45,097 bases of DNA. It comes from Macrostomum lignano (Eukaryota). This document shows, piece by piece, positions 1,217 through 37,004 of this stretch. The translations under genes were made by a program, and so were the position numbers. Each line of letters begins with the position of its first letter. Position 1 is the stretch's first letter. Below the pieces are notes generated by a model. It saw only the letters and a program-made list of their open reading frames with translations. It did not search any database and had not been told where the DNA came from. Where the stretch lies: the NCBI GenBank assembly GCA_002269645.1, contig NIVC01004457.1, positions 1 through 45,097 of the forward strand, given 5' to 3'.

Positions 1217-2769
1217 AAGACGTAAAGACGGTCTCTGACTGTTTTTACCCTGGTTGCCTCTCTGGTAGCTTGTCTAAGGGTTGTGCGCAATCCGATTGGC
1301 CTGGCTTCGGCTAGCCCAATTTCTAAGGGTCCGCCCCGGAGGGGCTTTGCCCATTCTAAAAATAACCCAATTCTTTTTTCGTACATTCCAATAATTTGGC
1401 CATCGGCCCTGGGTTAGGGGTGGTGTACCTGGAGTGAGTTGGAGATCTGGACTGCAGTGTGGCTAGAACGGGACTTGAGCCCCCCGGTCGCACCCGCCCT
1501 GCAGGAAAGACGACCATTCACATAACTGTACGGTAGAGCCCAGTTGATGCTAGCCCTGAGGCTGGCCCCGGGTTAGGGTTCAGGTGCTCCTCCTTTCTGC
1601 CATTTTTTTCTGGGCTGGCATCCTAGCGCGGTTTTATCCCCATACTTTTATGTTTTTATTCTTTTATCGGGCCATGGAAGCCTTCCAATTCTCGGAGTTA
1701 TTATTGTGTCTAGGCTCTCATCTCTGACAGTGGATTGAAGTCCTGGGAAGGATGTTGTAGCGAGCAACTCTAGCTGGTTGTTGCGAGTGTTAGTTAGCCA
1801 CTCAAAAAGGTGAAGAAATAGAATGTGGCTGTGCCTGTATATTTATTGTCTGGTTGAACACAGATTTCCGGTTCATTGAGTGCGCGTTGGGATGTGCTCG
1901 CAGAGGGAAGTGGATAGGCTAGGTGGGGGTAACGGAGTGCAAACTAGTGAATGAAGACGCTGTCGTCTTCAAAGGTGGGACGATGGGTTATTAATGTTTG
2001 TAACTTTTATGGCTATGACAGCTATTTATTTAACCCAAATTAAGATTTTCATTTTTAACATTTTCAATTCCAATTCTGTTTTTCGCGCACTCCGAGGACT
2101 TGTCTGCTGGGGGTAGCCTGGGTGGACTCGGTCCTAGTATCAGCGTTCAAATCGCTGATATGCTATTACAAACTTATCATAGATATTTAATGTTAGACCC
2201 ACCCATTTGCCTGCACTAAAACAGCCACGCAGACCATGCGTGCCCTCTCCGTGTTAATTTATCTAGCTGCCTAACTATACAAAAAAGCAAATAAGATGGG
2301 TGGGGCGGAAAAATATCACGCCACCACCCAACGCTGCCCCCGAGCACAATGTCGAGCATTATAAATACAATGCAATTGAAAGAGCCGAGGCTCTCCACTG
2401 CCGAGTTGAGTAAAGTTTGAGCTCAAACCTAAGAAAAGGACTTGTCTCAGTTCTTCGAAGTTTCTGCCTGTCGTGGCAGAGGGGTAGCAGGCGTGTAAGG
2501 TAGTGGGCGTGAGAGGCCTTTCAGAGACTACCGATAAAAGACCTGTTACACCTAGCACCGTCCCTGATTCCACTTTTTGGGTTGGCGGTGTCTTGTACCA
2601 TAGGCTTGGGCTAGTAGCTCCAAAATTTCCCCCTGGCCTGACTCCGGGGCCCAATCAGGAGGGTATCTCGGGCTTAGGCCCCTGGAAGTGCCCCTCAGCG
2701 GCAGAGCCCCCCCCCCCAGGGCTGATCCGCGGGAAGCAAGCTCTTTCCAGCCCGTTTAACAACAACAAC
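1217..2769 (+). mobile_element. Non-coding retroposed element (SINE-like or LINE-derived) with spliced-leader-like 5' end and (AAC)n tail
   Basis: Identical 14-bp direct repeats AAAAATGCTATTTA at 1203-1216 and 2770-2783. GC-richer interior in AT-rich flanks. 3' stem GGGCTG...CAGCCC directly before the TTTAACAACAACAAC tail. No RT-like ORF. Confidence 0.75.
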
Positions 2770-3853: not shown

Positions 3854-4918
3854 TCAGTTGTTCAATGGATGGAAGACGTCGACCACTTGACTGCTGTCCC
3901 GCTGTGCCGGCAGCAACTCCCGTTCGCACTCACAACAGATGCCGATCAGGTTGCCAAGTCCCAGTAAATATCCCGTGTCTGGTTGATTGTCCGGCACTGG
4001 AACTACGTGCGTGAAGTCAACCATGCAAACCAGCACATCCGGGTCACGTTGCGGACAGCTCTCGACGCCCAGTAGGATTGAACTGGCGTAGAAATGGTAC
4101 ATGCGTTGAGTCTCGAACCAGCGTTGAAGGCTCTCCAAGCCAGCTAGCAGCTGCTTGACTAAAAACACCCGATGCTGCGCTGGAGCCGTCGACAACAGCG
4201 GCTGCAGCACGGCGGTTTGCATGTTAGACGGCGTTACCTCGCGACCGTAGCGTTTTCCGTGCAACTCATAACCGTGACACTCCTGGCGCCACAGGCGCAT
4301 TCCAGTGACGAAAAAACCAGTCTGTTGCCGGTAGGCGTACCTTGAGAAATGAGTTGAAATGAAATATCAACCCTGTGCTTGTGTATCGTTCGATTCGATC
4401 CCTGTGTTGTACACTGCTGGCTAAAATAATATGCATGTAAGGAGCAGCAGAAAGTCACCGATTTTGGTCTCAAAAAGATGATCACCACTCGACTATAAAA
4501 TTAATTTAGCATGGCCGCACCTGTCCGGTCGTTCCTTCGTTTCGCCGCTGCAATCTGGCTCGTGTCGCCGGGCGCCCATCTTGATGTCAATTATGGACGG
4601 TCGAGCGAATCCGTCCAGCAAGTCGCTCAGACGGATGTACAGCTTACCAGTTACCGGATGCTGGTGCACACCCAGAAAGCTCGACAGGAAGCAGCGCAGG
4701 GCCGACAGTTGCTGCACCTGATGCCGTTGCTGCGGGTCGAATGGAGGCTCATCCTTCCGCGAGCCAAACACGGCCTCGTAGAAGTTCACCTCTCTCGGGC
4801 CCTTCGGCGCCTCCTGGACTGGTTTATAGACGCAGCGCTCGCTCGGCGAGTACAGAACTGCGGATTTGTAGTTGGTGTAGCCCGTTAAGAATAATATTCG
4901 CAGGAGGGCTGCGGGCAT
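3854..4918 (-). CDS. IPMK: Inositol polyphosphate multikinase (IPK family); exons ~4918/4978-4521 and 4340-3854
   Basis: Motifs KPVQEAPKGPREVNFY, PSIIDIKMG (PxxxDxKxG), GFFVTGMR, SSILL and MVDFTH. A GT-AG intron at 4520-4341 joins the two ORFs in frame (PDR|YAYRQQTGFF). The start codon is uncertain. Confidence 0.9.
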
Positions 4919-6022
4919 CCTGGCGCAGCGCCTTCGGCGACATCGTCCTACAACCAGCGCTGAGGCAGCTCTGCCCATTCCGCTGACTCCTGAGTACATG
5001 CAAGCGCGCCAATGCTGTACGCATGCACGCACTCATGCACACGCCCCAGACAGGTACAGGGTGTACAGTGAACATGAGTTTCTAATCGTCAGGCATGTAC
5101 ACTCTCTGTGCCATGACCCTCATGGGTGTTAATCGTACGACACACCCCCGGGGCCGATTTTCGTGCACCAGCCCCAAATTAATGTGGCCGGCCGCGCAAG
5201 GAATGAAGCAGGGGAGGAGCCGCGAGGGTCAAACGCGTTTGCCACTGAGCTGCTCTGCCCCCCCCCAGAGTAAGCACATTTCCGTGTTACTGCAACAGTA
5301 TCCTATAGTCATTACTTCGTAAAAAACTACGAGTTCATGAGAGATGCTTTCTTTACAGGTACTGGCTAGAGAAGAGTCTAAAGACTAGACGGAAATAATT
5401 AGCGGCCAATTTAAGTAAATTTGCAGTGTAAATTTGTTCCTCGTAACCTGCACTAGAATTGGATTGCTCCGATGAGCCGATAAAAAAATAATGTTAAGGG
5501 CTAGCTCTTGGTTTTTAAAGCATAGTCAGTCCGGAAACAGAGTCGAATGCTTGAAGTTTAGACGTTGCCAGTTTAGCAATTCACATTGTTGCACATAGCG
5601 TTTTGTTTAAACTTGTTGCACAAATGACTTTAAAAGCTTCCTACATGTATTTCTGCTCAGACTTGCTTTTGTCAATAAACTTGCATGTATTTTACATGTT
5701 TGTTAGCAGTCAGAGAGCAAGTTTTGTTTAACTTCCTAGTGGGTCTGGAAATTCGAAATAAAACTTGTAGTTGCCTTAATTGCTGGCTATCAGAACGGGG
5801 ATCGTAATCCCTTTCTCTGCGATAAAAATACTGCTCATAGATAATGTGTAGACTAGTGTTTAAAATATCAACAAACTTGAAATTTGCAGCAAGCGAGAGA
5901 GTCAAAACACACTGTAGATCATAATTAACCTTTGTGTGTCTGCGCTGCGATCTGTCTTAATACAAATAACAGCGCATGTGAGCCTACTGTACTGTTAAAC
6001 AGCTGAATTACGCAGTTTTTAA

Positions 6023-6905: not shown

Positions 6906-9276
6906 CTATAAAATTGCGCCCTGCTACACGAAAAGGGAATAAGCATTGTTCATATAGAAATGTCTGTTCATAGCAGAGGGACATAGCGATAAAAATCCGC
7001 GGTCTCTGCATTCGGACTGAGGTATGGAGTGTGACACTTTGCCTGCACTCATTAATGTACAGCCGCAGGCGCTCAGGCGAGCAAAATGGTCAGAAAGTTA
7101 GATAAGTAGAGAAGAAAATGGATGCTATTTTTATTAGCTATGGTCACTGCAAACAAAACGAAAGTTCACGACAATGTGAAAATTGCGCAGCCAAGTCTTG
7201 ATGTACTTCGCATTTGCTTACATTGACCGAGCGGATCGTCTCCTGAAAAAAGAATTGTTTGTTGGATTCTTTAATAACTGATTGTGTCTGTTGCCTAAAT
7301 TGTGTCAATGTGGTCTATTGAGAAATTTAAACCCCTGTGATCATGTGATAAAATACATACCGATTTTATGTGGTAGCAGATTGCCATAACCCGTGATTTG
7401 ATGCTCGTAATTGCATACGTCTGAAGGCAAATGAGGATGTTCTGTTGAAGAGAGAGACATATCTATCACTTTTTTAGTTTCATCTGAAAGTGAATTAATT
7501 ATAAGGATTGATTCAGAATAGTTAATTGTGGAGAGGGTGCAACAAATCAAAATATGTAAACATCTGCAGTATATGAACCATGCATCAGTATAGAAAAAGT
7601 GTACATCAGACATAATCATAAGCTAGTTAACACAAGCTCTTGCTAAATTTACCGCCAATAGTATATTGAAAATATACTTCAATACTCGGAATGCAAAAAA
7701 CCTATTTGTACACTTAATATTTATACAAGGCAGAAATTTTAATAAAATAACATAGCTATAATAGCTATAATAAAAGCTAATTGGTGTGAATTTTTAAAAA
7801 GCTTTTAATGAATGTCGAAAAGTCATTTGCTCAATTGAATGACTCAAGAGAGAATCAAATATGAGTTTGATTAAAGAATTCAAAACTGCAAAACTATTAA
7901 AAATTGTACATTACTAAAAGAAGATATAACTGTTTTTTCGTTATTTTTGCACGGAAACTGTCTGTGTGAAACGTATGTGATTGTGTCGGTTGTAAAGTAT
8001 GCTTTAAAATATTAAATTAAAAGGTCTGAATTAACAACTCTAAAGAAATCGATTCAAAAATTTTAAGACAAGACTAATGTATGACTTACCTAGACGACAC
8101 AAATGGGCCTTGAGTGATGATAAAATATAAATTGTTTGTATAAAATGTTAAACAAAGTTTTCGTACGAATATCGTTCTTCAACGAACCTTGACATTACAC
8201 TTTTCCTTAGTAAAATTCTTGCAATAGACTAAATTTTATTTTTTATTTTTTATAATTTAAAAATTCATTTTTGTTCTTCTACTAGGTCAAAGACGAAAAA
8301 CGAATTTGTTTAAATTTGTTTCATTTTTTAAAAATCTGCTTAAAGCAGTTCAATAACGTCTTTACGGGACGGTTTAGGCAGTTCAATGTTTGCAGCGTCG
8401 TAGTGGTGGCTAGAAGTTGAAATCTTACAGGTTCATAAACTGCTAATTAGAACTATATATCCTGAAGCTGCTGTGATACTTCAGAGTTGCCGACGATTGA
8501 TAAATTCGGATGACGGCTTACAGTGTTGTTTAATATTTTACGAGCTATAGCACCAAACCCAAGTATCTAGGCCAAGAACGTGACGACCAAAAATCTCTAA
8601 GTACTATATCGCCGTTACGAATTTAAACATAAATCGTCCACAATTGCATGTGATGAGGACGCACTTTTTTTCCAAATTTCACGCTCGCACATGGGTGCAG
8701 GGTTCCAAACTTGCTAGCCTACATGTACTAACAGCAGGCTTTGGGCGTTTTTCTCCCTCTTGCAATTTTTCTAGAATTCATGCTAGTGTAGCTATTTCTG
8801 TATTTCTGTTTCCGACTTCTGTAGCTATATTAATCTGCCATACTTGTAGTTATAATAATATACGCGTGGTTTTTTGCTGCTTTTGGGTCATAAATCATTG
8901 CGTCTGAGCTGGTCTGACAGCCACCTGCGCCTCACTCAATGCTGAGGCTGGCGCCAGATGGTCTGAGAGGATTCGGGCGGTGGCTTTTTTCTCATCATTT
9001 TGACAGGCCATCAAGATTTATGAGGTCAGGGCCTATTGTTCGTGTTCACTCAAGCGTGTGACAGCTTTGACAGCTATGCGTTTTACCCCTAAAAGTACGT
9101 TGGGATTAGCGATTAGCGATTTCTCTTCATTATCTTCACTTTCTACTTAATAAGAGCTTCTAATGTATATTTTTCATTAACCTTTGTCATTTCTACGCGA
9201 AAGGTCATAAATCATTATGTAGCGATTTTGAGTGATTTATGACCGCACCTGTCGTATTTTTATGGCCCCGAGGGAA

Positions 9277-9770: not shown

Positions 9771-11111
9771 AGCTGGATTAGGCGCACACTTTTGCTCATT
9801 TTGTTCAACAGTGCTGTTATCGAGGCAGAAATCACTCAATAATACTGCTAGTAGTCTAAGACTCCAATTCAATCTGAGATGTGAAGTGATTTAAGGAGAA
9901 GGTTAAATCTGACAGTTATTTTTATCGGTTTTATTTCTTTGCTCGCCGATGGCTCAGATGAGGAGCTAAGCTAGTAGGCGCCGGTCACAGTGGACCAATG
10001 GCAAGGCAGTTCCAGTCGATCAATCTATCAAATCAGTTAGCGAAATTGCCAATAGTGCAAAATCGGCGCTAGAGATGTACTTTGTGCACTCTAGGTTAGC
10101 CAAGCGGCTCGGGTAATGAATCATGCGGTCTCTGAAGTTCGAGTTAGTCTATCATCAGCGCTATGAGAGGCTAGTTGGCGCGTTGAAGGCCAAAAGTACA
10201 TATCTTCGTATTTAGCAATGTAATAGTACATGCAGCTTCCCCATAGACTCGCCACCGCAAGAATCCCCTGCACAAGTCCCCTCTGTACCTGCATGGCCAA
10301 TGCGATCTAGTCCCAGCAGTGTCCCTTATATCATTGGCTATGACTTCGAGATTGACAGCAAAAAGACACTAGTTGGCAGGTAAGTGCTAAGCCCCCTCTA
10401 GTCGGAAGCCCGATTTCGAAAGTCCCGGTTTGGTGAGCCAGGACGCACGGGCTGGTGGCAGCGGGTTAGTTAATCTGCGGATTGGCTAATCTCTACCTTC
10501 AAAAATTCTCCCTGCTTGTCTCTCGCTGTCCCTCTCTTAGCTATAGGACCTAGACTGCTCGCCACACGATCAAGCTACCATGGGGCTGACCATCTGACAG
10601 GAGTGGGGGGCCAGGACTCTAATTGATTTATTTCTGAGACCTGAGGCCCGAAGGCTTCCCCACAAGGGGGCCGAAAGGTCGAAACCTATCACATGCAATA
10701 AAACAATAATCGATAATCATTATAATGCAGTATAACAATAAAGGAAACATCTAATAAATATGTAAATATGTACAATTACTTCTGAGTTCAAACTCAATAT
10801 TGCAAATTGCACGTGAAAACTACAGTAAAAAACAGGCGTAATGAAGGATTATACTTGAAGAATGTAAAGGGAATACATTTTGATAGGAAAGGGGATAGAA
10901 AGATTTAGCAGTTTTAGAATACGAAAAAGCTTTTTTGTTTCAAAAAATGTTCAAACTGAAAAAGAGATATTCCGTTCAACGTATTCTCGACAAAAATATG
11001 TTTTCTTGTATCAGCACATCTTCGTATCCCCATCCCCCCGATACCACCGGCGAACATACTTGCCCGCCAACCGTTATAATTAATGATGGAAGCAAAAATA
11101 AATAAGAATTA

Positions 11112-12468
11112 CTAGCCTGCAGAGGGCAGAGGGCAGACTGACTGACTGACTGACTGACTGACTGACTGACTGACTGACTGACTGACTGACTGACTGACTG
11201 ACTGACTGACTGACTGACTGACTGACTGACTGACTGACTGACTGACTGACTGACTGACTGACTGACTGACTGACTGACTGACTGACTGACTGACTGACTG
11301 ACTGACTGACTGACTGACTGACTGACTGACTGACTGACTGACTGACTGACTGACTGACTGACTGACTGACTGACTGACTGACTGACTGACTGACTGACTG
11401 ACTGACTGACTGACTGACTGACTGACTGACTGACTGACTGACTGACTGACTGACTGACTGACTGACTGACTGACTGACTGACTGACTGACTGACTGACTG
11501 ACTGACTGACTGACTGACTTTCTTTTTCCGTCGCCGCCAAATGAAGGCTACGACTGCACTATAAGCTTAGAAGCGGCGATCTCTCTAATCGCCACTTGCA
11601 TGGTGAATGCATGGGAACCTAAATCAGTTGGAGGTAGAGAAAAGTGTGATGGGGAAATTTCATTGGCTGCATAGTTGCCATGGGTCACCAAGAAACATTT
11701 AGACTTCAGTTGGGTCGAGATAATAGTGTATTGTACTGAAGTTGGCGATCAGTGAGCAGGGTTAGTCATCATTCCGCCCACCCATCTTCAGATCCCAAGC
11801 TAGCGTTCATGTACTCAGTTCTGTCTGTCTCTTACCTAGTTGAGTACTCAGAATCGCCCTAAGCTCTGTAGAATAGATATAACCCGCACAACTGTTTGAG
11901 AATTGAAATTTGAAAAGTTGCTAGGTAAACAGTGGGGGTAAAACTTGGGGTAGAGAAGGTAGAAAAGTTCTCCCATCCCAATTCTCAAGGTCGATGCCTT
12001 GTCTGCATGGCAGAGAACTGCGATCATGCTGCCCACCCTGACCCCAGGGCCGCCTCCTCCCTTCCGTACTGAGACGGGACTCAATCATGCAAATCCCGTA
12101 CGCATTTAAGATGGACTGAAAAGGAGAGAAAGTTGGGGGCAGGAGAGGAGGGAAGCAATTGCTATCCCCCTCATCCGCCAAAAGCAGGCATCGCCTGTGC
12201 GGCCAGCTGAAGGGATGGGCGATGGACGAACCGGGGGGGGGGGGGGCGATGTGCACGTGGCCGCTTCTCTGTCCAATGCGTCTTGAAGGGAGTTGACAAG
12301 CTACATACACAGCAGTATTCCTCAAGCCTAGCTCTAGCTCTCAAGTCTTTCAATCGGTCATGGAAATGTTCTAACGTCTACCTAGATCGGCATTATTTGT
12401 ACGTTGCACCTCGAATTAATTTTCAACCTGTAAGTATAGTTAACGCTCTTTCCTATAATATTGTAGGA
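11112..12468 (-). mobile_element. Probable non-autonomous Helitron-like element carrying a (GACT)n microsatellite
   Basis: On the minus strand it starts TCCTACAATATTATAGGA and ends in a short hairpin CTGC-CCTCT-GCAG followed by CTAG|T, the canonical Helitron 3' end. The 5' boundary is tentative. Confidence 0.45.
11136..11519. repeat. (GACT)n tetranucleotide microsatellite, ~96 perfect units
   Basis: Directly visible. Confidence 0.99.
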
Positions 12469-15439: not shown

Positions 15440-15731
15440 CATACTTTTGACACAGGCATGCAGTGACATTACTTATGACACACCCGAAGTAGCAACAGTC
15501 TAGTTATTAACAGCGACAATAGACATCAAGGATATGATTTTATACTCGGTAACGGCTACCCCTCTCTAACTCAAATTGACACGGTGCACAAAAGTTAAAG
15601 CAACGCCATTGGTGATTCAGCTGTCAAGTGAGTTCATTAAGCGGCACTAAGCGGTTGGTGATCAAGATGTCACGAGTGAAAGCATTGTCGTGCATGGTTC
15701 CTTCGTATCCATAGATAGAGTTTAGTGGAGT

Positions 15732-16685
15732 GCTTCAGGGAGATACGCTGGCGCCGTTCCTGTTCGTCCTGGTGCTTGACTGGGTGCTGCGGACTGCTCT
15801 TCCTACCGACGACGACGGCTTTCTGCTGCGGCGACGCGTGGGTCGACGTCAACCGGAGAAGCGGCTCAGCGTGCTTGGCTACGCCGACGACCTCGCCCTG
15901 CTGTCCTCGACCGTCGAGGGCGCCCAACGGCAGCTGGACAGGCTGGTTGCCGTTGCGGCGAGTGTTGGCCTGGTGGTCAACACGCAGAAGACCGTTGTGC
16001 TCTGCGTGCCGGACGACATCGAGGCTGCAATATTCTGCCGAGGCGCTAACGGGCAGGCGACCGAGCTCCCGCAATGTCAGCAGTTCGTCTACCTCGGCGG
16101 TCTGGTTCCAGACGCTCGCGAGGACCTGCGACGCCGCCGCGGGCTTGCCTGGGCTGCCTTTCGTTCTGTGAGGGCAGTCCTACAGTCTGAGGCCCTACCG
16201 GACCGCCAGAGGGCGGCGCTGTTCCAGGCGGTAATCGAGACCATCCTGCTCTACAACGCCGAGACCTGGACGCTGACGGACTCACTCGAACAGCAAGTCG
16301 ATGCGGCGCACGCTGGCCTGCTGCGCGCCGCCTTCAACATCGGCGTCGAGCGAGTCAACCACGCGGTACTCTATCGCCGCGCTGGCCTGCCACGCCCAAG
16401 CGATCTACTGCGCCGTCGGCGACTCTAGCTCGCAGGCCATCTCACCGCGCCGAGTCCTACTACCCACAGCCGGTGCAGGAGGTGCTGCTGCTCACGCTGC
16501 AGGCACCCTACCGGCGAGGTAAAGCGCAAACTCGGCGTTACGTCGACTGTCTGCTGGCTGACGCCGGCGCCCCGGACACTGCCGGTGGCGCGGCCTTTGT
16601 TCGCGCCCAAGCCATGAAGCGCGCCCTGTGACGCTGACTTTTGCCATCCTGACAGCATATTTTGTTGTTGTTGTTGTTGTTGTTG
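15732..16685 (+). mobile_element. 5'-truncated RTE-like non-LTR retrotransposon (RT C-terminal half, pseudogenised) with (TTG)n tail
   Basis: LQGDTLAPFLF and YADD RT motifs, FVYLGG, and ILLYNAETWTL. Premature TAG at 16426-16428 followed by a frameshift. Natural stop ~16630. TSD TTAGTGGAGT at 15722-15731 and 16686-16695. Confidence 0.92.
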
Positions 16686-17500
16686 TTAGTGGAGTATATC
16701 TGATTGCAATTTAATTTCATGTTGTTGTTCTTGAGGGAATTTTGTTAAACAAGAGGAATGGTAGGGACTGTTAAAACTTTTTAAACACGACGTTGAAAGT
16801 GCCTTCGAGTAGTTCAGTGGGAGCACCTAGCGTCAAGATGCACTCAGCATCATGTTAAAGCTCCCCCGCCCCCGAGACCAGTGGTCAACTTTTCCCAGAT
16901 CTCAGCGCCTAGTGACGCAATTCACAAGCCATTTTTTACCACTCGTTTCCGGGTGGAAACTTCAGCATGTTGCTGCGTATGTATAGGCTTTTTCCGGTCA
17001 AGTATCAAACAGGCACCTCAAAGGTGCAAATAACTCAGTTCAAGTGGCAACAGCCCAAATCAAGTTGCAGATTGTTAATTCAGAGTTTTCAAAAGACAAA
17101 GTCAAGTGCATCATAGTCATTTCAAGTAGCAGACTCATTCGATTTTGTGTATTTCACTTCTGCCACGGTATAACGAACGCAAGAGGCGAATCGGTCCCAT
17201 AAAATTTGCAGATAAACTGAATTTGGTGTACTTGAGATTGCCATGTTGAACTTGAGTTGGATATTGTGCTACTTGTCCAGAAAAAACCTATGGTCGGATG
17301 GCCGCATTAACTCAGGGTTCGCGCACTAAAATTGATCCCTGACTCATCGTGAAAATGACGCTCAATGGGGGACTAACACCAAGGGCACAAAGTTTAATGT
17401 ACAATGCCTGACGATGAAAGAGTCAGGGCCTCTGTACACTAAACCATGTGTGAGTGCGTGCCTGTGTAATTATCAATATGTGTGCTGTGCCCCCCTTTAA

Positions 17501-17634: not shown

Positions 17635-18005
17635 TTTAGCAAACTGCTACGAGCATAAACGCTGAGCGCATTCGCTTTGCTATCTCATCTAGCTTGTTAA
17701 GGTGATAAGCGGACAGAGCCCCAAGGGAGTGGGGTTAGCAACCGCTGTCTTTATTGGCCTGGCAGAGCGAGGGCTTGGTGAGGCTCACTTTGCAGTTGAT
17801 TGGCGAAGCGGGCATGCTTTAAACCGCCACCTACCGGGTATTTCAGGCGTCCGAGCGTAGCCGAGAACAAGCCCCCCCCCCAAACCAGCCAGCTCAGACT
17901 GCACGGCACAGAGAAAGCGACAATTCAACAGACAGAAACAGGAAAAGCAGAGAGTTGGAATCGAGCCCAAGACCTGCCTAAAGACCAGACGAGAGAAACA
18001 GCTAG

Positions 18006-21000
18006 ATGAGAAGGCAGGAGTTGTTCATCCGAACAATACTGGTAGTCGGTGTCGTCTATGTAAGTGACAACTGTATTATTTTTTACAACGTTTCCGATTT
18101 TGGTGTCTCGTAAACATTGATTTTGAGTAGCAATATAAGTTTCACACCAAAACATTAAAACCACATAACTTTGATATTTACATTAGCTGGGTCTTTGATA
18201 TTTACATTAGCTGGGTCGGGTTTGTTGAGAACTTGGGGTACAGTGAGTCTGGCCGATCGATAAAGCAAAGAAACCGAAAAAAACGCGTTAGTCAGAACAA
18301 GCACAAGGCAAACGCACTCCTCTGAGGATCTCGCGAGGCACAGGAGACGAAAAGCAGAGAATTTTTGCCGTCTTTCCAACATCTGCTTCTCTGCATATTG
18401 TGGAACAACGACAAGCACCCATTGGCCACTATATTAAAAGTGCAAATTTTAGCTTTGGTAAATAGATTTGGAACTGCTTAGAATAGATGATGGAAGCCAA
18501 AAAGTTTATTTATTCTATATACTTCTAAAATTGGTTTGAGCAAACTTGGACCCGCAGAGCTATTAGCGTGTACCGGCTTTTAGTCTAGAATTGGTATGGG
18601 CACAAAAACTAGCCAAAGTCTAGTGGGATGACTTTGGACCAAGTCACGGCTTTCCTAGAAAGAGCTATAGTCTATGGTCTAAGTCTATGGTAGCCGCTGC
18701 TAGCTGGTGCAATTCTGCATACCTTAGTCTATGGTAGCCACTGCTAGCTGGTGCAATTCTGCATACCTTAGTCTATGGTAGCCGCTGCTAGCTGGTGCAA
18801 TTCTGCATACCTTAGTCTATGGTAGCCGCTGCTAGCTGGTGCAATTCTGCATACCTTAGTCTATGGTAGCCGCTGCTAGCTGGTGCAATTCTGCATACCT
18901 TAGTCTATGGTAGCCGCTGCTAGCTGGTGCAATTCTGCATACCTTAGTCTATGGTAGCCGCTGCTAGCTGGTGCAATTCTGCATACCTTAGTCTATGGTA
19001 GCCGCTGCTAGCTGGTGCAATTCTGCATACCTTAGTCTATGGTAGCCGCTGCTAGCTGGTGCAATTCTGCATACCTTAGTCTATGGTAGCCGCTGCTAGC
19101 TGGTGCAATTCTGCATACCTTAGTCTATGGTAGCTGCTGCTAGCTGGTGCAATTCTGCATACCTTAGTCTATGGTAGCCGCTGCTAGCTGGTGCAATTCT
19201 GAATACCTTAGTCTATGATAGCTGCTGCTAGCTGGCTCGTATTGCGATTCTGCACATCCTGTTGAAGACAGTTGCTTTGAGCTGCGTGCAGCACGAATGA
19301 GTCGACTGAGAAGTCCCCGGATATAGCTAAGCAGCACTTAGCTAGTAGGGAGAAACTGGCTGCTTTGAGAGATTAGGCAGTGTTGAAGGCGATTTCATTT
19401 CCGTGTAACTTCCCAGCAGCAATTGTCCCTACTGCGTCCGGAGCAAATAATTCTGGCGTTAATTTTTTATAGAAGCGAGACAGCCAGTTGCACACCAATT
19501 TTACTCTATAAGTAATTTTTTCTTGAAATTTCTACAAGTTCTATTTGCTATGATGCCAACAGACCTTCTGTTTCTGGATAGGCCCACTAGCAATGAGTCA
19601 TCAATAAGTTTGCATTGCCACAAATTTTTTTTTGAAAAATATGTTGGCCTTGAGTTGGCAAAGCCATACGGCTCATCAGTCCGCACGCATTTCTCACCTC
19701 GACTTCCGCAATCTCCCAGGCAACGTGGAAAACTGCCGGCTGGTACTGGTCTGATGGTGAGGAAATTCCCAGGTCAGTCATTTCGAGTCAATGGCCTTCT
19801 GTTGTGCCAAAGCCGCTGAACCCTGAGCCAAACAAGCCTCATGCACAGCAGGCTTGACGTCCAACTTCGCTAAAGCTAGCGACGCCAACTGCCAGAACTA
19901 CACCTACAACTCAGAGTACGCGAACAACCACAAGAGCTGCAGTCGCGCCCACAAAGAAAGCTGCACCAGCGTTCAATTCGTCTGCTCGCATACCGCGAAT
20001 TCTGCACCAGGCGTTTGCATCCGAGATGGTCTACGAAAACTACCTGCCTTACATTAACAGCTGCATGGCGCTGAACCCGGACTGGACATATTATCTGTGG
20101 CGGGACAGCGACGCGGAGGCGCTGATCAGCTCCGCCTATCCGGAGTTTCTCGCCAAGTACAAGAAATACTCTGACGTGCTGGAGCGGGCCGACTCTATTC
20201 GGTACATTGTTCTGCACCACTTTGGCGGTGAGCGGCTTTGAGGACTTGTTAGTTACCCGGAGCTTTGAGTGCCGCTTCAGGAAAGCATTTGAAGCTGAAT
20301 CATGCTAATATAGATGCAAAATCGGTCAAATTGGATTGAAAGAAAATCTATAATTTCACATAGAAGCATACGAGCCAGCCCGTAAAAATAGACACACTCA
20401 AGCCCTGCCACTTGTAAAGTGCTCGCAACCAATTTTTCTATTGCAGCTCAGCGATGCTACCCTATTACAGCCGGGTGGGTGGTCAAATACCTCAGCATGA
20501 TAGATCATTCTCTTATTAACTGCCTACCTACGTACTAACCGCGGCCTGCTCTGCTTAACTAGCAGCGCTGGCGGTAAATGCGCTATTCACTTTGCTCTAT
20601 TCGCTAACGACCCCTGTAGGGTTTTCATAAGCGCCTTTAAATCTCATATAGGAGTGATATCAGATGTCTTTGCTAGTTTCTAGAATTGTTTTCCGGCTCT
20701 TTGCCAGTTACAAATTACAATGCTTCAGGTGTAAATGTTGCATAGACAAAATAATTGCCTATTTTGTCAAAAGGTTCGGTCGTTCCTCAGTTACCAGGCA
20801 TGCATCGTTATGTTCCGACACTCCCTGCTCCGTTATTTCAGGAATTTACCTGGATATGGACGTACAGTGCGTCAGGCCATTCTTCCCAGCACTGGAGAAT
20901 TTTAACAGCTTTTTGGACCAGGAGCGAATCGAGCAGACGAACATCTTCTGGGGCTGGCCGTTCAGCGTGATGAACTCAGCAATGGGCTCCGCTCCCGGTC

Positions 21001-23033
21001 ATCCGTTCTTCCGCGAGGTGATCAACGAAATGTTGCACAAGTCTCAGATTGGCAACGCGTTTGCCACCACGGGCCCGGCCATCCTCACCCAGGTGTACAA
21101 GCAATATACGGCTGTCAAGCCCGCGGTGCCGGTCACCCTGCTCGAGCCGAATGTGATGTCGCCCCTCATGGATGGCAACAAGAACTGGCGCAGCATGTGC
21201 GGCTCATTGGGTGAGATCCCTTTTGGAGCTTAAATTAATTGTGCAGAGAGTTTAGGCAGGGAAAAATGACTAGTGACAAAAATAAGCAGAACGCTCAACG
21301 ACTCGGACTGCTGCGACCTCATTCTGGGTTGTTTAGCGGTTGTTGTTGCTAAATCACAGACGTTATTTGCGCAGAGGAAATGCTCGATTGATCAGTCACC
21401 ACTTAGCTTCTAAAAGTATACTTGCTTGTAAAACTTGACCTTGCAGTGCCGAAGCATTCACTTTGGAAACCTTACTATGATAACAGCGACGAGTATTGCT
21501 CTATGTAGCTGTTGCTCGTGCAGTACAGCGGCTTAGAAAGTCGTACTTAGCGATTCTGTGCATATTTTAGCCTAGATAACAATTGGTGAGGTAGCTCGTA
21601 CATGCGCTTAAATTTGGTAGTAGTATTTCACTATCAGCTACATGTGTGTGTACTAGCATGAAATGAAGCTCATCTTCAGACTGGAGCTGAAGGGTACCAG
21701 AATACAATGTAGAGACGTAATTAGGGGTTAAATAGGAGATCAATTTTCATAGCACTCGTACTTATGCAATTCCGCCGCAATCAATAACTACGGCCCGGCA
21801 TACATGGGACACGCTTCCAAACATAAAAGAGACGCGCGACCGCCATGCATGTGGATATGAAATACGTCTCACAACCCGAGCAGTTGTGAGACACTCTGCT
21901 GCACAATTTTTCTCTTACTGCAATGCTTAGTATTGGCAAACGTTGGTCTTATCTACGTGTGAGTCACATTTAGCAAACCCTGAATAGCTAGCGATATAGC
22001 GGAGAGCGAGCAAAGTCTTGCGGAAGAGAGTGGAAATATGAATTTAAATTTTTCTAAGTCGAGTCTTTGACCGGCTAGCTGGGTGACGAGATGCGTGCAC
22101 AAGTCTGTCAGTTAATCTGCTTTCAAAACTTTTGCTTGACTGAATCGATAGGCACAAATAGCTGAAGGCGTGCAATTTTTCTACTTTTAAAAGCAGACAA
22201 CACTTCAGTAAAGTTAGCAGATCCTGTAAGCAGGCGTCTCTTCAGCTGATTCAACAAGAGCGGATTAAAACTAGAGTGACATGCGCGAATGACACACACA
22301 GACACACGCGGAACTTTTTTCCTGACGATTTTCGGGTTGATGAAATTGTTGACACGCACGGAGTGAAGGCGCGGGTTTTTATTATCGATAGTTGAGAAAA
22401 CTCTGCAAGAACAGTAGTCGAATGTTTTTTGTGAAAAAAGGGTTCCTAGGGGAAACAGGCACGCCATCAAGCCGCTCTGTTTTGCATGCGTAAGCTCTAC
22501 AATTTTAACGCTGGCTGTCAGAGAAGATTTTAGTCAGATCTGATTTGTCATTCAGTGAGGACTGAGGATCAAACAGCAGTGAGGATTTGATTGCGCTGGT
22601 AGTTTCATTCTATGAACAATGAGAGACCGGGAGGAAGCAGTAGGATCCCAGGCAGTAGTCGCTCTCTCCCGCATTACTATCGCCGGACTGGGGCTGCACG
22701 GTTCTCTCCTCCAGATACTTGTAAAGGCAGTACAATGCTTGGCCGTCAAGAGAGTTTACTAGCTATACTACTAGATTAGAATCTATTAATAATTTAATTT
22801 TATGCCCCTGCTTTTCAGCTGCAGCCAAATCGAAGCCAGACTCGCGGCGCAGCTGGAAAGAGCGCGGCTGCATCATGCTTGAGTCGAAGAACTGGCGCTA
22901 CGATGACTCGGACAATTCCACAATCTGCGTTCACAGATTCCTTCATCTTGGCTACGGCTTCGCTGCCGGGGCGCGCAAGAAGCCGTTTAATGTCACTGCC
23001 CGCTTCTGGCCCCGGGTTCGAACTTTCAAATGA
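18006..23033 (+). pseudogene. GT32 (DXD sugar-binding, SUR1/OCH1-like) glycosyltransferase copy 1; exons 18006-18059, 19720-20227, 20842-21210, 22819-23033; in-frame TGA at 19855-19857
   Basis: Signal anchor MRRQELFIRTILVVGVVY|ATWK, IPRILHQ, ERADSIRYIVLHHFG|GIYLDMD, and PGHPFF. All introns are GT-AG and in phase. The C-terminus is 4 aa shorter than copy 2 (CGA to TGA). Confidence 0.85.
18682..19235. repeat. 44-bp minisatellite (~12.5 units) in intron 1 of GT copy 1
   Basis: Unit CTTAGTCTATGGTAGCCGCTGCTAGCTGGTGCAATTCTGCATAC. Confidence 0.98.
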
Positions 23034-24587
23034 AGAGGTAACAGGTGGCTGACTGTCAAGTGCCTAAGCTTCTAGTGATGCCATTTCATAACAGAAGGAA
23101 AGTTCACACTGCGAATTCAAAGAAACGCGTTGGAATGTCTCGTAGCTCGTTGGTGTTGCAATTCACAAATTTGATGGACTTTAGCCGCAGGACAGAAGCA
23201 GTAGTGTTAGTGTTTTAGAACATTTTCCTGTGCAATAAGTGTCAAATACTCATATTCCATGTCAAATGTAATAGTGTTTGCTTATTTTAAACAAGATCTT
23301 GCTCTTGTACTGTTTTGCCATTGCACCTTGATCCGAATTGACCCGATGGCTTAGCATGCACATGCACTATTCATCAGCTCATGCATCTCTACAGGTGCTT
23401 TGGAGGACAGATTCTATTGTAAACTAGCCATAATTACGCTCGTTGTTACTTACCATCATTCGGTGGATGAGAGCACTGCCGCATCTTGGCTGAATTTTGC
23501 GTACTGTTTTATTGAAACGAATTCTGACGGCGTGATGCGTGTTTGCTCATTCTGTCATATTCATCCTCCGCAGATGCAGCTATATTTCGCATGCGGCACC
23601 AATAGATTTGTGATGAAGCGTCAGACGGACATGAAAACTTCAGTTATGAGCACAATTTCGTATAAAGATTCCCTATGACTCACAATTTACCGTACGGATA
23701 TATTTTACACATAATGCAATTGCGTTTCCGAGACTGTCAGATGCATTAGAAATTACATTTTTGCCAATCAGTTCATGTTCCAATGTGCTGTGATTAGTTT
23801 TGTTACAAATAAGTAGCCGAATTAATTAATCTATAAAAGCTACAAATTCCCATGTAGGTTAAAGCATTGTAAGAGCGAAAATGACATTCCATCACTATAA
23901 TCTATCTAATACTTGTATATCTAATATATAGTCTTTATTATGTTTCTTCTTACTAGCTCTTATTATTTCAATACCTCGTGACTGAGGTGTGTCAATGTTT
24001 TCGCTTCAATTTTTCCAGCAAATGCCTATCGTAATGAATGCGACGAAGATTCAGATAGATTTAACTTCTTAAATTTAATTTGCGTTGAAAATTGAGTCCT
24101 GGTAGTAAGCGGCAGTCTTCGTGGCTGAGAGGCCGTGCTCTTAGAGCTACTGACTTGTGCAAGATTCATTTAGCTTGCACTATAAATGTAAAGCTTACTT
24201 CCCTACGACTGCTTATAAAATCAAGAAAATTAGCCTATCAGGTAAGCCAGATAAAGCTGCATGTACGCGCGTTACTCACTTGTAACTCTACAGCCGCGAG
24301 ATAACGAGAAAACCTACTTATAATGTACACCCGTAACAAAAAATTACCTGCTTTAAAAGTACTCGCATATTCTTCTAGCCAATAGGCATTACTCGTCAAG
24401 GAAATACTGGATGACTCGAAAAAGATGCAGGAGCGTGTGGACTACTAGACGTAGTCGAAGACGTAGACGCTACTCTTGCAATTTCATTTTGATGCTAAAG
24501 ATCAACCTCTTCTTATTTTTGGGCAGACATCGCCCTTCACTTAAAGAATTATAGCGTCTTTCTAGACGTATGTCACTTAAATCGTAT

Positions 24588-25053
24588 GACGGCCGGTATA
24601 TATGGTCTAAGACGGCCGATGTATGTAGTCCAAGAGGGCCGATGTCTATGGTCTAAGACGGCCGATGTATGTAGCCTAAGAGGGCCGATGTCTATGGTCT
24701 AAGACGGCCGATGTATGTAGTCTAAGAGAGCCGATGTCTATGGTCTAAGACGGACGATGTATGTAGCCTAAGAGGGCCGATGTCTATGGTCTAAGACGGC
24801 CGATGTATGTATTCTAAGAGAGCCGATGTCTATGGTCTAAGACGGACGATGTATGTAGTCTAAGAGGGCCGATGTTATGGTCTAAGACGGCCGATGTCTA
24901 TGGTCTAAGACGGACGATGTATGTAGTCTAAGAAGGCCGATGTCTATGGTCTAAGACGGCCGATGTTTGTAATCTAAGACGGCCGATGTCTATAGTCAAG
25001 ACGGCCGATGTCTATGGTCTAAGACGACCGATGTCTATGGTAGAAGACGGCCG
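24588..25053. repeat. 23-bp minisatellite with alternating dimeric (46-bp) higher-order structure
   Basis: Units GCCGATGTCTATGGTCTAAGACG and GCCGATGTATGTAGYCTAAGAGG alternate. Confidence 0.97.
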
Positions 25054-25787
25054 GGGGTCGGACACTGATTCAACTTGAAGCTTAACTCAGTGACTCAGCT
25101 CGCAACGTTTCAAAAACCTTCAGAGCGAAAAATGAAATCCGAGCGTCTTTAACGCCTTGTAGGCCCTAAACGGTTTGACATGTAAACAAATGAATTTCAT
25201 GCACTATACAACAAGACGGGACTTGATAAAACTAACATTTTTTACTTTCCTAAATTAAACCCTATAATGTATCGTGCTTTTCCTTTACAGATTGAGCCAT
25301 ACCTCAGCTAGGAAACTCTACAAATAGGTCGATCTGTTGCACTTCCTGCCCACGGATATCTTTTTTATAGAAAAAGTTTCGCGACATTCGCTTCCTAATA
25401 TCGAATTATCCATTAGCAGAAAGAGGAATCTTTCAGCTGCCTTTCTGCCTGCCCTATCTCTTTGAGTGTAGGGTGAACACGAATTGTCCACCCTACAATC
25501 CGTGCTCATTCTGAGTTCTATGGTTCTGTAGGGTGTAGAGAGCGTCTAGTCCAGTTTTACACAATTAATTTATGAGGACCCGAGACAGGGTCAGAGCAGG
25601 ACATCTCAGTTTACTAGTGTGCTACATTGAGAAGTTATCGCTCCTATTCTATAGGTTTTTCCTGGTCAAGTAGTCAACACAGATTGCTTCCATGTCAAGG
25701 CTTCATGAAGAGAATTACTGAAATGCTGGGGCTGCTGGGGAGAATTTCTGAGACGTCAAGGTTCATTAGAAAAATTGCTGAGATATC

Positions 25788-25974
25788 TGTCATGACTTAT
25801 GGGGTGGGGCCGCGCGGTAGGGGTGAAGCTTGTTTAGTAAGCCTTGTGAGCAGTACGTACGGTATGTACATGCGCGGGCCACCGTGCCCCTTGGCCTATA
25901 AAATATACAGAGCGTGGAGGGTTTTGCCTCAAGTGAGTTACTCCAAAATAAGCGATTGACTTGACTTCATTACA
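25788..25974 (+). mobile_element. 187-bp solo LTR
   Basis: TGTCATGA...TCATTACA termini, 5-bp TSD ATATC on both sides, internal TATAAAA and AATAAG. It interrupts a degenerate GCTGAGATGTCAAGG repeat tract. Confidence 0.85.
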
Positions 25975-26742
25975 ATATCAACAATGGAGTTGCTGAGATG
26001 TCAAGGCTCATGAGGGGATTGCTGAAATGCTGTGGCTCATGGAGGGGGTTGCTGAGATGCCAAGGGTCAATTGGAAGCTGTTGGTAGGCCAAGCCGAAGG
26101 TAGATCAAAGAGGAGTTAGGATTAAGCCATGGCATAAAAGGGAAGCTTTGATGCCAAAGCTCACAGGGGATGCTAATATCTTAGGCTGGATAGCTGACTT
26201 TCAGGGCTCATGACTTTTACATTAAGCATCATTTTACTTCGAATACTAACAATGGAGGCTTTTCCCCTCCTTTTTCGCTCTGGCCTGGCGCGGAAGCGGT
26301 TAGCTTCCTCGTCTTGGTCTGCTGGTGGAGGACGGATCCCCCCTGCTGCTTTTTTGCAGGGCAGGTGGCTGCTAAGTAGTTGGCTGCTGGCTAAGCGCCA
26401 ACTACCCATCGACAGCCCATAGTTGCAACTGGTACCACACGGGTTCTCGAGGGCCGCTCCTGTAGGGGAGGGCTCGGGCGTCGGCTGTCAACCCGACCTG
26501 GCGCTTGTGTCCCAAGCCCGCAGCCGGCCTCCCGCCCCCTGATCTTGCAGAGTGTGGACCGGGGGCCTGCCGGAGCCTCGCCTGGGAGCAATCCTGGGAA
26601 AAGACGGCAACCCAAAGCTTCTCTGCTGTTTACCGTGGCAGAGGGTAGCTCCACGGAGCTGGCTGGGGGTATATCCAGTCCCCGAGCGGTTACCCTCCCC
26701 TATTTTTCTACATTTCAGTTTTTCCATTTCAGCCTACTCTGC

Positions 26743-29441
<2,699 letters not shown>

Positions 29442-29897: not shown

Positions 29898-30058
29898 GGC
29901 TGTCCCAACAATGCTATCATAGCCAGTGTGGATAGGGCTGTCCCAACAATTCCATCATAGCCAGTGTGGATAGGGCTGTCCCAACAATTCCATCATAGCC
30001 AGTGTGGATAGGGCTGTCCCAACAATTCCATCATAGCCAGTGTGGATAGGGCTGTCCC
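29898..30058. repeat. 38-bp tandem repeat (~4.2 units)
   Basis: Unit GGCTGTCCCAACAATTCCATCATAGCCAGTGTGGATAG. Confidence 0.97.
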
Positions 30059-30229
30059 GAAAATTACACTAACACCATATTCATCAAGCGAAGTTTGAAC
30101 TCTCCAAACATGCTAATATAATTCACTACTGTGTTGAAAGCACACTCTAGAGCTCTACCGAGTTCATTGCACAGGTTCAAATTATAGACAGGTTGCAAAA
30201 AAATTGCGTCCACTGAGTAACACATTGTT

Positions 30230-31860: not shown

Positions 31861-32973
31861 TCACGGTGGGAGTAGCTCAATGATCCGCTGCCTTTCTGCT
31901 CGACCAGCAGCGGTGTCTTCAGCCAGTGCGGCTTCATTTTCAGCAGTTGCTTCCATGGCTAGCGGCTGATGTTCAGGTGGAAGTGGAACGGCTCTGGCCA
32001 CGGCGAAATTGTGGAGCACGCAGCATGCAACAATGATGTTGCACACTTTACTCGGATTGAATTGTAAAGCTCCTCCGCTGTGATCGAGGCATCGAAATCT
32101 TGCTTTCAAAACACCAAAAGCCCTCTCGATTGTTACGCGCGTTTTGCTTAGTCGCCGGTTGAAATTTTGCTCGGAATTTGTTTGTGGATCCCTAAATGGC
32201 GTCATCAGAAACGGTCGGAGTGGGTAGCCCGCATCTCCAACCAAGAAGCCAGCGACCTTCCCATCCGCGAGGAGATCTTTCAGTGCAGATTGTTGAAAAA
32301 TGAAGGAGTCGTGGCTACTGCCAGGCCAACGTGCGACAACGTTTGTAAATGCGAGATTGGCACTACATACGGCCTGAACATTAATCGAGTGAAATCCTTT
32401 TCGATTAATGAAGATTCCACCGTCATCGGTAGGGCGCCGGATGCGGATGTGCGTGCAGTCTATGGCTCCGAGCACCTGAGGCATTCCGGCAATTTAAAAA
32501 AATGCACGTGCTGATGCTGCTGCTGCTTGCTGATTGCTTGGAAACGAAATGCAAATGGGTGCCATGTCCTGAAGTAGCAGGCAACCTCCAGTCACAACTC
32601 CGGACACCGTGACGCAGCTACAGTTGAAAACGTCCCCAATGACTTTGAGAAAGCTGCCTGTTGCAAAAAATCGGAGGGCAAGGCAAACCTGCAGTTCGAC
32701 GGAAATAGCTCTGTTGCGACGCGTCTGACGTTGTAGTTGCGGCCGCAGCAACTCAATGAGCTCCAGCAAAAGTTGACGTGGCAGCCGGTACCGCTCGAAA
32801 ATTTCCCGATTACTGAAGTCGAGAGGGTCAAGTCTGTCTCGAAACCTTCTCTCAGTTCTCAAAGCATGCTGAGCGAATGCGATGTCCAAAAAATTCATTC
32901 TCGGATCTGACTTTGGCAATTGCAAGTGAGTTAGCAATCCGATGGGGAATTTCAGCGCTAAGTTCTTGAACAT
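31861..32973 (-). pseudogene. Harbinger DDE transposase (~370 aa) with a single in-frame TAA at 32494-32496
   Basis: ELQVCLALRFFATGSF, GAIDCTHI, VVARWPGSSHDS, LVGDAGYP, and RVTIERAFGVLKARFRCL. The two ORFs share one frame. Confidence 0.93.
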
Positions 32974-33290: not shown

Positions 33291-34083
33291 TTGGAATGCA
33301 ATGAATTCTTACGCAGCACAAAAACGCGCGGCGAACTGGTCAACGGCGGAACTGGAGACGCTGCAAGAAGCAACGACCGAACGGAAAAGTTACCTGGAGA
33401 GCCCCAAGCGAATTTTCGCAAGAAACGCGGATGGCAGCAAATTGCCGATATCGTGAATGCAGTCGGTGGACAAGGACGTTCTGGAGAGAACTGCCGAAAG
33501 CGGTGGTCCGACTTCAAGAGTCAACTGAAGCACAAAGTAGCCAGCATCCGCAAGGAGCAAGCTAAGACGGGAGGCGGTCCATCGCAGGCCCCACAGCTGT
33601 CGAGTTTAGAGGAGAAGGCGGCGCAGTCCATCCGAAAACAGGTCGTGGAAGGCGTGCCACGTGGTGTTGACACGCTGCAGCTGCCTAAATCCAATAGTGC
33701 AGCATCAAGCTTGGCGGCCAAGTACATTGATATCGCAAGTGCGCCTGCTGATGAATTTTCCGAAGCTGTTGGCAGAAGCACATCGCCTGAGTACGAGACA
33801 GCTGACGACGAAAAAAGTGAAGAGTCTGTTGCTAACCCCGCTGCCAAGAACACGAAGCGTCAGCGAAAGCAGAGCAAACTTGGGCTGATCGAAAGCTTAG
33901 AAATAAAACGTCTTCGGGTGGAGGAAGCTCGATTGGAAGTTGAAAACGACAGATTGTTTGTCGAGAGAGAGAGAGGCTGAAGATCGAGACGGAACGTCTA
34001 CGCGTTGAGCAGGAAAGACTGACGATAGAAAATAAAAATCGAGGCAATGAGAGCAGTCAACAGCTTAATTTTAATGACATGTG
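33291..34083 (+). pseudogene. Harbinger Myb/SANT-like DNA-binding protein; frameshift in a (GA)n run near 33965-33976
   Basis: KKRGWQQIADIVNAVGGQGRSGENCRKRWSDFK and KTGGGP. The coiled-coil tail continues as ERLKIETERLRVEQERL in another frame. Confidence 0.88.
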
Positions 34084-36346: not shown

Positions 36347-37004
36347 CATTCAGGCAATTAAGGTAGGGCGGAGGGACAAAGCATTGGCATTTCCCCCTTG
36401 GTGGCGACGTGTCTGTTATTTTTTATGCGTAAAAGACGGAAATGCATAACATGGATGGGTGTACATACACTCAGCAACATGTTAGTTTCCACCCCAGTGT
36501 TGTCAACAAGTAGGCAGCTTTAACCCAACTCTAGCCATCACTCTCCACTCCTCACCAGCCTAAGCTGGGGCCTTGTCCGCGAATTGCATCACCCGACAGT
36601 TAAAACGAGAACCGCTGGGTGTTGCGAATTGCGTCACTCGGGGCTGAGATCTGGGAAAAATTGGCCACTGGTTTTTTAGAGTGGAAACTTTGGAGTGGAA
36701 ATGCAATGCTCTTTGCTATCTCATCTAGCTTATTAGTGATAAACGGCCGTTTGGGATAGCAATCGGCCGATAGCCGATCGGCAGGGCAGAGACAGGGCTT
36801 GGTGAGGCTCACTATGCAATCGACTGACGGATGCTTTACACGAACTTTATACCGCCTCCATTTCAGGCGTCTGAGCGTAGCCGAGAACAAGCTGCTCCCC
36901 CCAGCCAACTCAGACTGTGTGAGCACAGAAAAAAGCGATAATTGAACAGAGCGTTGGAATCGAGCCCAAGGGCTGCCTAAAGACCAGACAAAAGAGGCAG
37001 CTCG

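Follow-up and report, generated by a model that had tools for sequence, protein, structure and literature searches.

How can the 5' half of a spliced leader (SL), and that half alone, come to stand at the very beginning of a non-coding retroposon? The question is raised by a 1.55-kb insertion in a 45,097-bp stretch of Macrostomum lignano DNA (assembly GCA_002269645.1, contig NIVC01004457.1, forward strand; this whole stretch is hereafter called the window). A first reading of the bare letters, here called the original prediction, had described the insertion as an element headed by a piece of the flatworm SL. Our analysis has confirmed that the SL-capped insert is a real and unusual chimera, and has added a point absent from that description, namely a hairpin that the SL piece forms with the bases following it. 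What is said below about the element refers to one copy (1203-2787 of the window), and a single copy does not divide a one-off event from a family trait.

Read directly in the window, the SL-headed insert occupies 1221-2769 (1549 bp), has a GC content of 0.496, contains no open reading frame (ORF) and ends in an (AAC)4 tail. It is bounded by a perfect 14/14 target-site duplication, AAAAATGCTATTTA, with copies at 1203-1216 and 2770-2783. The repeat search extended this duplication to 17/18 (94%) when 1203-1220 was set against 2770-2787, the additional bases being AAGA on the left and TAGA on the right. The tail, AACAACAACAAC (2758-2769), is flush with the right copy, and the GC content of the left (0.279) and right (0.346) flanks is well below that of the insert. 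Rejoining the flanks without the insert restores an uninterrupted AT-rich sequence; the expected empty site reads …GAAAGTAAAAATGCTATTTA[A/T]AGATATTAAAG…. About one 14-mer direct repeat with a spacing of 300-6000 bp is expected by chance per window and such a repeat is therefore not rare in itself; it is the position flush with the tail, together with the jump in composition, and not the length alone, that identifies it as a target-site duplication. Besides this duplication, the repeat search found no terminal direct or inverted repeats (long terminal repeats, LTRs, or terminal inverted repeats, TIRs) within 1150-2850. The longest stop-free stretch of the insert has 112 aa (minus strand), and a Pfam search of its ten stop-free frames gave no matches. 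The insert therefore has the traits of non-LTR retroposition: a flanking target-site duplication, a simple-repeat tail abutting it and neither LTR nor TIR. The description of an ORF-less, (AAC)n-tailed 1.55-kb insertion with a 14-bp duplication was thus borne out by direct reading and by the ORF and Pfam checks. The placement of the head four nucleotides inside the left duplication had to be corrected, as it starts four nucleotides after the perfect 14 bp. The 5' boundary lies somewhere in 1217-1221, most simply at 1221; the choice between 1217 and 1221 is ambiguous because of a repetition at the junction. Specifically, 1213-1230 reads TT(TAAAGACG)(TAAAGACG)GT, the end of the left flank and the first two bases of the head repeating SL 4-11, which results either from chance, the target being AT-rich (TATAGA in the right copy), or from a short re-copying by the reverse transcriptase (RT).

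The SL of M. lignano is CCGTAAAGACGGTCTCTTACTGCGAAGACTCAATTTATTGCATG (Grudniewska et al. 2016, PMC5173321), and it is identical in M. cliftonense and M. hystrix (PMC10468722, supplementary table). The sequence that the original prediction had given for it was therefore correct, and so was the match that it had drawn from it. The first 21 nt of the insert, CGTAAAGACGGTCTCTGACTG (1221-1241), correspond to SL positions 2-22 at 20/21 with 16 contiguous identical bases: 1221-1236 is an exact copy of SL 2-17, 1237 has a G where the SL has T18, and the ACTG at 1238-1241 equals SL 19-22. The head is in sense orientation and begins 1 nt from the published 5' end of the SL; the site is unique in the window, and none of 100 shuffles contained a match. 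The 3' half of the SL is absent from the whole window even with 5 mismatches allowed.

A pattern scan of public DNA has recovered two intact Macrostomum-type SL RNA genes, one at 616-722 of the JGI metagenome contig Ga0302322_100095745 (L002) and the other at 1590-1695 of JAGQZA010000190.1 (L004), a contig in a Flavobacteriaceae metagenome-assembled genome. The latter contig (3.7 kb, coverage 2.6) is flatworm contamination of a bacterial bin. L002 was the only intact gene found among the metagenomes, the GTDB genomes gave L004 together with two chance bacterial matches (L003, L005), and the viral contigs gave nothing. Both genes read TTTG/CCGTAAAGACGG...GCATG/GTAAG, followed by a hairpin, the Sm-like AUUUUUAG and a 3' hairpin, and their SL RNA folds agree with the one published for M. 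lignano. The SL RNA gene is all that the two contigs have in common; it is 91% identical between them with the differences in the hairpins, which makes the pair useful for an SL RNA covariance model. In both the SL is identical to the published one and the gene is uninterrupted. The comparison of the element start with these genes, which had been proposed as a check, upheld the SL identity. Elsewhere in the window there is a weaker SL-like site, CCGTAAAGACGTTATTGAACTG (8346-8367, minus strand), whose first 11 nt equal SL 1-11 and which has ACTG at the same offset (16/22 overall). The expectation for an exact 11-mer SL match in the window is ~0.02, and the covariance model matched 8291-8367 (minus strand) weakly (6.2 bits, E 6.6). 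With no target-site duplication, tail or donor evident, this site is probably due to chance.

The bases immediately following the SL match deserve separate attention. The seven bases 3' of it (1242-1248, TTTTTAC) pair with SL nucleotides 3-9, so that the element starts with a hairpin (1222-1248) having GTAAAGACGGTC (1222-1233) as left arm, TCT (1234-1236) as loop and GACTGTTTTTAC (1237-1248) as right arm. As RNA it reads GUAAAGACGGUC-UCU-GACUGUUUUUAC, with 12 bp including two G.U pairs. The folding energy of the sense strand is -13.2 kcal/mol (z -5.46) against -5.9 kcal/mol (z -1.72) for the antisense strand, which is weaker because the G.U pairs turn into A.C. The first 80 nt of the element (1221-1300, hairpin included) show strong structure (z -4.2). 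No comparable hairpin forms at the genuine SL 5' end (z -0.09), and a 3' stem that the original prediction had assumed at the other end of the element folds no differently from shuffled sequence (also z -0.09). The in-register pairing required of 1242-1248 has an empirical probability of 0.0013 per position in the window, a rarity that makes the hairpin no accident of the SL match. Of the 12 positions of the right arm, 10 fit the reverse complement of the SL start and 6 fit a continuation of the SL. The original prediction had spoken of a T-to-G change at 1237; the G is real, but a point mutation is not the obvious explanation, since this base closes the stem or marks the junction. Judged from the sequence, the securely SL-derived part is SL 2-17 (16 nt); the following ACTG (SL 19-22) fits SL and stem alike.

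Taken together, the anatomy of the insert shows that an RNA ending in (AAC)n was integrated by target-primed reverse transcription. The outermost 5' end of this template was formed by the cap-proximal 16-21 nt of the Macrostomum SL RNA, and cDNA synthesis stopped no more than 1-2 nt away from the cap site of the latter.

A number of conventional sources for such an insert could be discarded. It is not an SL RNA gene, as it lacks a complete exon with a terminal ATG and a GT donor behind it; of the SL it has positions 2-22 only, unlike L002 and L004. Neither is it headed by a whole-SL-RNA module, given that the covariance model built from these two genes found no match at 1221 with E up to 10 and the filters off, a result that also leaves unsupported the strong form of one of the options of the original prediction (an SL-RNA-derived family with a head from the whole SL RNA). 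Rfam found nothing on the head or the element, whether at the gathering score or at E values up to 10. Had a trans-spliced mRNA been retrocopied, the insert would have the SL 3' half and the ATG, an ORF or Pfam domain and a poly(A) tail, none of which is present; it ends in (AAC)4, and the sequence near its 3' end is free of poly(A) signals. Trans-splicing is an improbable source, as it would put the SL 3' end and the ATG beside the body, and the original prediction had rightly concluded from the missing 3' half that this is no ordinary retrocopy of that kind. A cryptic donor inside the SL producing a half leader does not fit either: there is no GU at SL 22/23, and the GU of a donor would be removed rather than kept. 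As for a short interspersed nuclear element (SINE) transcribed by RNA polymerase III, no tRNA, 7SL or 5S module was found in the insert (Rfam, ARAGORN), which is 1.55 kb long and contains seven runs of T5 or longer, one of them within the hairpin. Remnants of RT or endonuclease, as expected of a decayed long interspersed nuclear element (LINE), were missing from the ten stop-free frames in the Pfam search, and Rfam did not detect a hepatitis delta virus or hammerhead ribozyme. Finally, snap-back synthesis was rejected as the origin of the hairpin, the loop and left arm being SL-sense and the arms imperfect complements.

The reading that we favor, with a probability of about one half, is that the element is a young copy of a non-autonomous non-LTR retroposon of the RNA polymerase II (Pol II) type, to which the SL 5' end was joined at the RNA level before target-primed integration. 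The joining would not involve trans-splicing, which cannot leave the 5' half alone because there is no GU at SL 22/23 and because 5' truncation removes the wrong end. LINE reverse transcriptases produce chimeras of the U6/L1 type via template switching or after RNA ligation, and either route could apply here. The 5' end of the retroposon RNA (GACUGUUUUUAC...) would anneal over 12 bp to SL 3-14 and share ACUG with SL 19-22, an arrangement in which a pseudo-loop would separate the first base of the body from SL position 17 by 3 nt. The annealed SL RNA, or the SL on an mRNA, could then serve as the acceptor for a template switch of the RT at the end of first-strand synthesis; alternatively, a cleaved SL fragment might be ligated across the hairpin loop before reverse transcription. 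Both an internal template switch and a loop ligation are suited to the case because of the 12-bp geometry and the ACUG microhomology. By either route the RT would run off at the SL cap site, and a LINE enzyme accepting an (AAC)n-type 3' end would integrate the RNA at an AT-rich site, leaving the 14-18 bp target-site duplication.

A way to glimpse at the age of the join is to compare the changes accumulated in the different parts of the copy. The SL arm has none in 16 nt, the target-site duplication has 0-1 in 14-18 nt, and the right arm has two transitions, both of which preserve pairing. Either the arms are of independent origin or the RNA-level maintenance of the hairpin is older than this insertion. 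Given the two G.U pairs of the right arm, and an SL arm and a duplication that are essentially unmutated, we lean by a hair, on this one copy, towards a join that predates the insertion, the hairpin head being inherited from a master copy or subfamily.

Several observations weigh against a join at the RNA level in a young retroposon copy. Only one copy has been seen, so neither the normal 5' end of the body nor the timing of the join is fixed. When an RT jumps from one template end to another in vitro, it starts on the acceptor from the 3' end. A jump of this kind would copy the entire 107-nt SL RNA, as happens with U6 in U6/L1 chimeras; because the head contains its first 17-22 nt only, one has to postulate that the switch was internal or that a cleaved piece of the SL was used. 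Moreover, a pre-existing complementarity of 12 nt is either a coincidence of the order of 1e-3 or a selected feature, and if it was selected it points to a family-level function and not to an accident. Nor did the window yield an (AAC)n-tailed partner LINE: both LINE fragments in it had to be rejected in view of their tails (AAGTCA-like and (TTG)8). The larger one (27390-29441, minus strand) is a 5'-truncated element of the RNase-H type containing RT and RNase H. Its ORF (26715-29258, minus strand) is 97% identical to the M. lignano protein A0A1I8IXZ7 (UniRef), and most of its other top matches are M. lignano proteins too, in keeping with the species. Full-length relatives (L001) carry ORF1, an apurinic/apyrimidinic endonuclease, RT and RNase H, and the family ends in the AAGTCA-like repeat, as seen at ~25960-25990 of the window and at the 3' end of a related contig (L006). 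The other fragment, from a second LINE family, consists of an RT (RVT_1) at 15730-16428 (plus strand), with the (TTG)8/(GTT)8 tail 240 bp further on (16664-16687).

A selected head leads to the rival explanations. One that we entertain as a tentative possibility is a family of Pol II-transcribed non-autonomous retroposons with a functional SL-mimicking hairpin (the first 16-21 nt of the SL) as its conserved 5' terminus; the hairpin might act as an intragenic SL-promoter element fixing the start, as a mimic or protection of the SL 5' end, or in second-strand priming. A conserved functional head of this kind would agree with all the observations made here. More doubtful is the related idea that an SL-RNA-derived 5' module has been kept by selection across a Pol II-transcribed, SINE-like retroposon family, SL start and hairpin together working as an initiator, an internal promoter element or a 5'-end protection signal. 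The pairing maintained through G.U pairs and its strand asymmetry are the usual signature of constraint at the RNA level, and the strong structure of the first 80 nt points the same way. The SL RNA gene of Ascaris provides a precedent for such a module, as its SL sequence doubles as an intragenic promoter element. The MAFFT alignment also places GGTAG, a U-rich stretch and the terminal hairpin of the element opposite the donor, the Sm-like site and the 3' hairpin of the SL RNA. However, past nt 22 the identity to the SL RNA is at the random level, the head escapes the covariance model as described above, a 1.55-kb element with seven T-runs is no classical SINE, and a single copy does not show conservation. 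A further explanation places the master elements in SL RNA genes, after SL 17-22, where they would be co-transcribed from the SL promoter in the manner of SLACS, CZAR, CRE or NeSL-1, and the copy in the window would be an off-target or trans-mobilised insertion exposing the SL 5' piece. It accounts for a sense head within 1-2 nt of the SL RNA 5' end and for the presence of the 5' part alone, just what the co-transcript of an interrupted SL gene would give, and it provides the external promoter that an ORF-less body requires. We consider it quite unlikely all the same: this copy lies in AT-rich DNA outside any SL gene, the covariance model found no SL RNA gene in the window, the two recovered SL RNA genes are uninterrupted, no RT or restriction-enzyme-like endonuclease partner has been seen, and the complementarity of the first 7-12 nt of the element to the SL 5' end is left unexplained. 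The SL RNA genes are besides few, with only ~8 reported for the deduplicated M. lignano assembly (PMC8629364).

If trans-splicing had instead given a retroposon or host transcript the full 44-nt SL, its 3' half would have to be lost later, by an intramolecular jump of the RT or by a deletion. Trans-spliced retrotransposon transcripts have indeed been proposed for the partial leaders in LINE and LTR loci (PMC12582326), and ACTG could serve as microhomology for a deletion. Such a history is very unlikely, for the (AAC)4 tail is not poly(A), no poly(A) signal lies nearby, and reverse transcription that stops short costs the SL its 5' part and not its 3' part. The near-perfect target-site duplication makes a later internal deletion unlikely, and the complementarity of the next 7 nt (p 0.0013) would need an explanation of its own. 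Chance resemblance of the 5' end to the SL, finally, can practically be dismissed. The 20-nt pattern does hit by chance in 596 Gb of bacterial genomes (the two bacterial matches noted above, with ~2 expected), but the expectation in a 45-kb window is ~1e-6 and the shuffles contained no match. The match also stands exactly at the 5' edge of the insert, begins at the SL's own 5' end, and occurs in a genome from a genus that uses this SL.

The closest known counterparts of the insert are the U6/L1 chimeras of mammals and fungi, in which a small nuclear RNA (snRNA) is fused to LINE or other RNA by template switching or prior ligation. They share with it the 5' part of an snRNA in sense orientation from its own +1, a single pair of target-site duplications and a LINE-type tail, the head (SL 2-17, perhaps to 22) following directly after the duplication. 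The resemblance ends there: the U6 parts are typically full length, whereas the head stops at 17-22 of the ~107 nt of the SL RNA, short of its 3' end; the partners are joined within the loop or stem of the 12-bp hairpin that they form together; the tail is (AAC)n and not poly(A); and the body matches nothing known. SLACS, CZAR and CRE1/2 of trypanosomatids and NeSL-1 of C. elegans are SL-gene-specific non-LTR retrotransposons that interrupt the SL exon. Their transcripts or junctions likewise have an SL 5' fragment upstream of the element, but they are autonomous (RT and endonuclease) and reside in SL genes, unlike this ORF-less copy.

Within the flatworms, Calvelo et al. 2025 (Mol Biol Evol, PMC12582326) discarded 597 candidate SL loci from 24 parasitic species that lay in LTR or LINE elements and had partial leaders, for which they suggested trans-spliced retrotransposon transcripts as the cause. 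The original prediction knew of no SL-headed retroposon described in flatworms, a statement that has to be amended: associations of the SL with retroelements are on record there, and none is known to have been dissected. The parasite loci are similar to the present case in being genomic SL fragments with a retroelement and no other SL RNA feature. They were filtered out undissected in a survey that did not cover Macrostomum, and in our insert it is the 5' half that is retained, which is impossible via trans-splicing and 5' truncation. There are also genes in which reverse transcription has fixed an SL in the genome, namely the SL-bearing retrogenes or recycled cDNAs of dinoflagellates and nematodes (papers cited in PMC12582326), and the M. 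lignano locus initially taken for the SL RNA gene, in which a protein-coding gene carries a fused SL (Ustyantsev and Berezikov 2021, PMC8629364). In these cases the SL 3' end is joined at the trans-splice acceptor of an mRNA, while the insert has neither the 3' half nor the ATG, and its body does not code for protein. We have found no description in the searchable literature of a hairpin-forming SL head, consisting of the 5' half only, on a target-site-duplicated retroposon.

We have looked for further copies of the element and for relatives of its surroundings. There is no second copy in the window by the repeat search or by blastn with a word size of 7. The 112-aa stop-free frame had no match among 5.8 billion proteins, and five concatenated frames of the element had 0 matches among 1.84 billion representative proteins. 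The pattern of the head-body junction found no match in the public DNA scanned, in collections that do not hold M. lignano genome DNA. The related LINE contigs L001 and L006 (Logan and JGI) have no SL-like head, and an exact look-up of an 847-aa LINE ORF and a 207-aa transposase from the window returned no record in the contig collection.

If the SL hairpin head should prove common to independent copies, this would be the first SL-RNA-headed retroposon family and a new route of interaction between trans-splicing and retrotransposition, which could account for the partial-leader loci in LINE and LTR elements of other flatworms. A trans-splicing snRNA would then have been co-opted as a retroposon head in the way that tRNA, 7SL, 5S and U1/U2 have been for SINEs. 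If it was a one-off, the insert is a clean example of a flatworm LINE reverse transcriptase making snRNA chimeras, with an unusual junction guided by base pairing. Copies of this kind contaminate the SL-based annotation of trans-spliced genes and the finding of SL RNA genes in Macrostomum, a regeneration model. The features of the insert are collected in Table 1.

Table 1. Features of the SL-headed insert and its borders, in positions of the window.
Feature	Position	Strand	Evidence
Left target-site duplication, AAAAATGCTATTTA	1203-1216, maybe to 1220 (AAGA, one mismatch)		14/14 against 2770-2783
SL-derived head (SL 2-22)	1221-1241	+	Sequence match to the published SL and to two SL RNA genes
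5'-terminal hairpin	1222-1248	+	12 pairs, two of them G.U; folding energy and shuffles
Non-coding body, GC ~0.5	1249-2757	+	No ORF, Pfam, Rfam or tRNA signal
(AAC)4 microsatellite tail, 3' end of the retroposed RNA	2758-2769	+	Direct reading
Right target-site duplication, AAAAATGCTATTTA	2770-2783, maybe to 2787 (TAGA)		Direct reading, repeat search

Other features were noted in the remainder of the window. A PIF/Harbinger-like DNA transposon is represented by a DDE_Tnp_4 transposase ORF (31861-32973, minus strand, E 8e-42) and a divergent Myb/SANT-like ORF (33291-33980, plus strand). A segmental duplication, broken by indels, relates ~17750-23040 to 36780-44040 at 80-98% identity and includes a glycosyltransferase-like exon (40515-40997). 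Inside it there are related tandem arrays of 44 nt and 39 nt (18591-19338 and 37538-38249); an (AAC)6 microsatellite at 41448-41465 belongs to its second copy only, the first copy lacking it at 20735. Further tandem arrays, at 11048-11600, 24539-25076 and 29898-30087, comprise a long (GACT)n, a 23-nt repeat containing TAAGACGGCCGATGT and a 38-nt repeat. The C-terminal 37 aa of the ORF at 4493-5032 (minus strand) align with the beginning of the inositol polyphosphate kinase domain (PF03770), and this ORF is likely an exon of a host gene, ~1.7 kb downstream of the insert.

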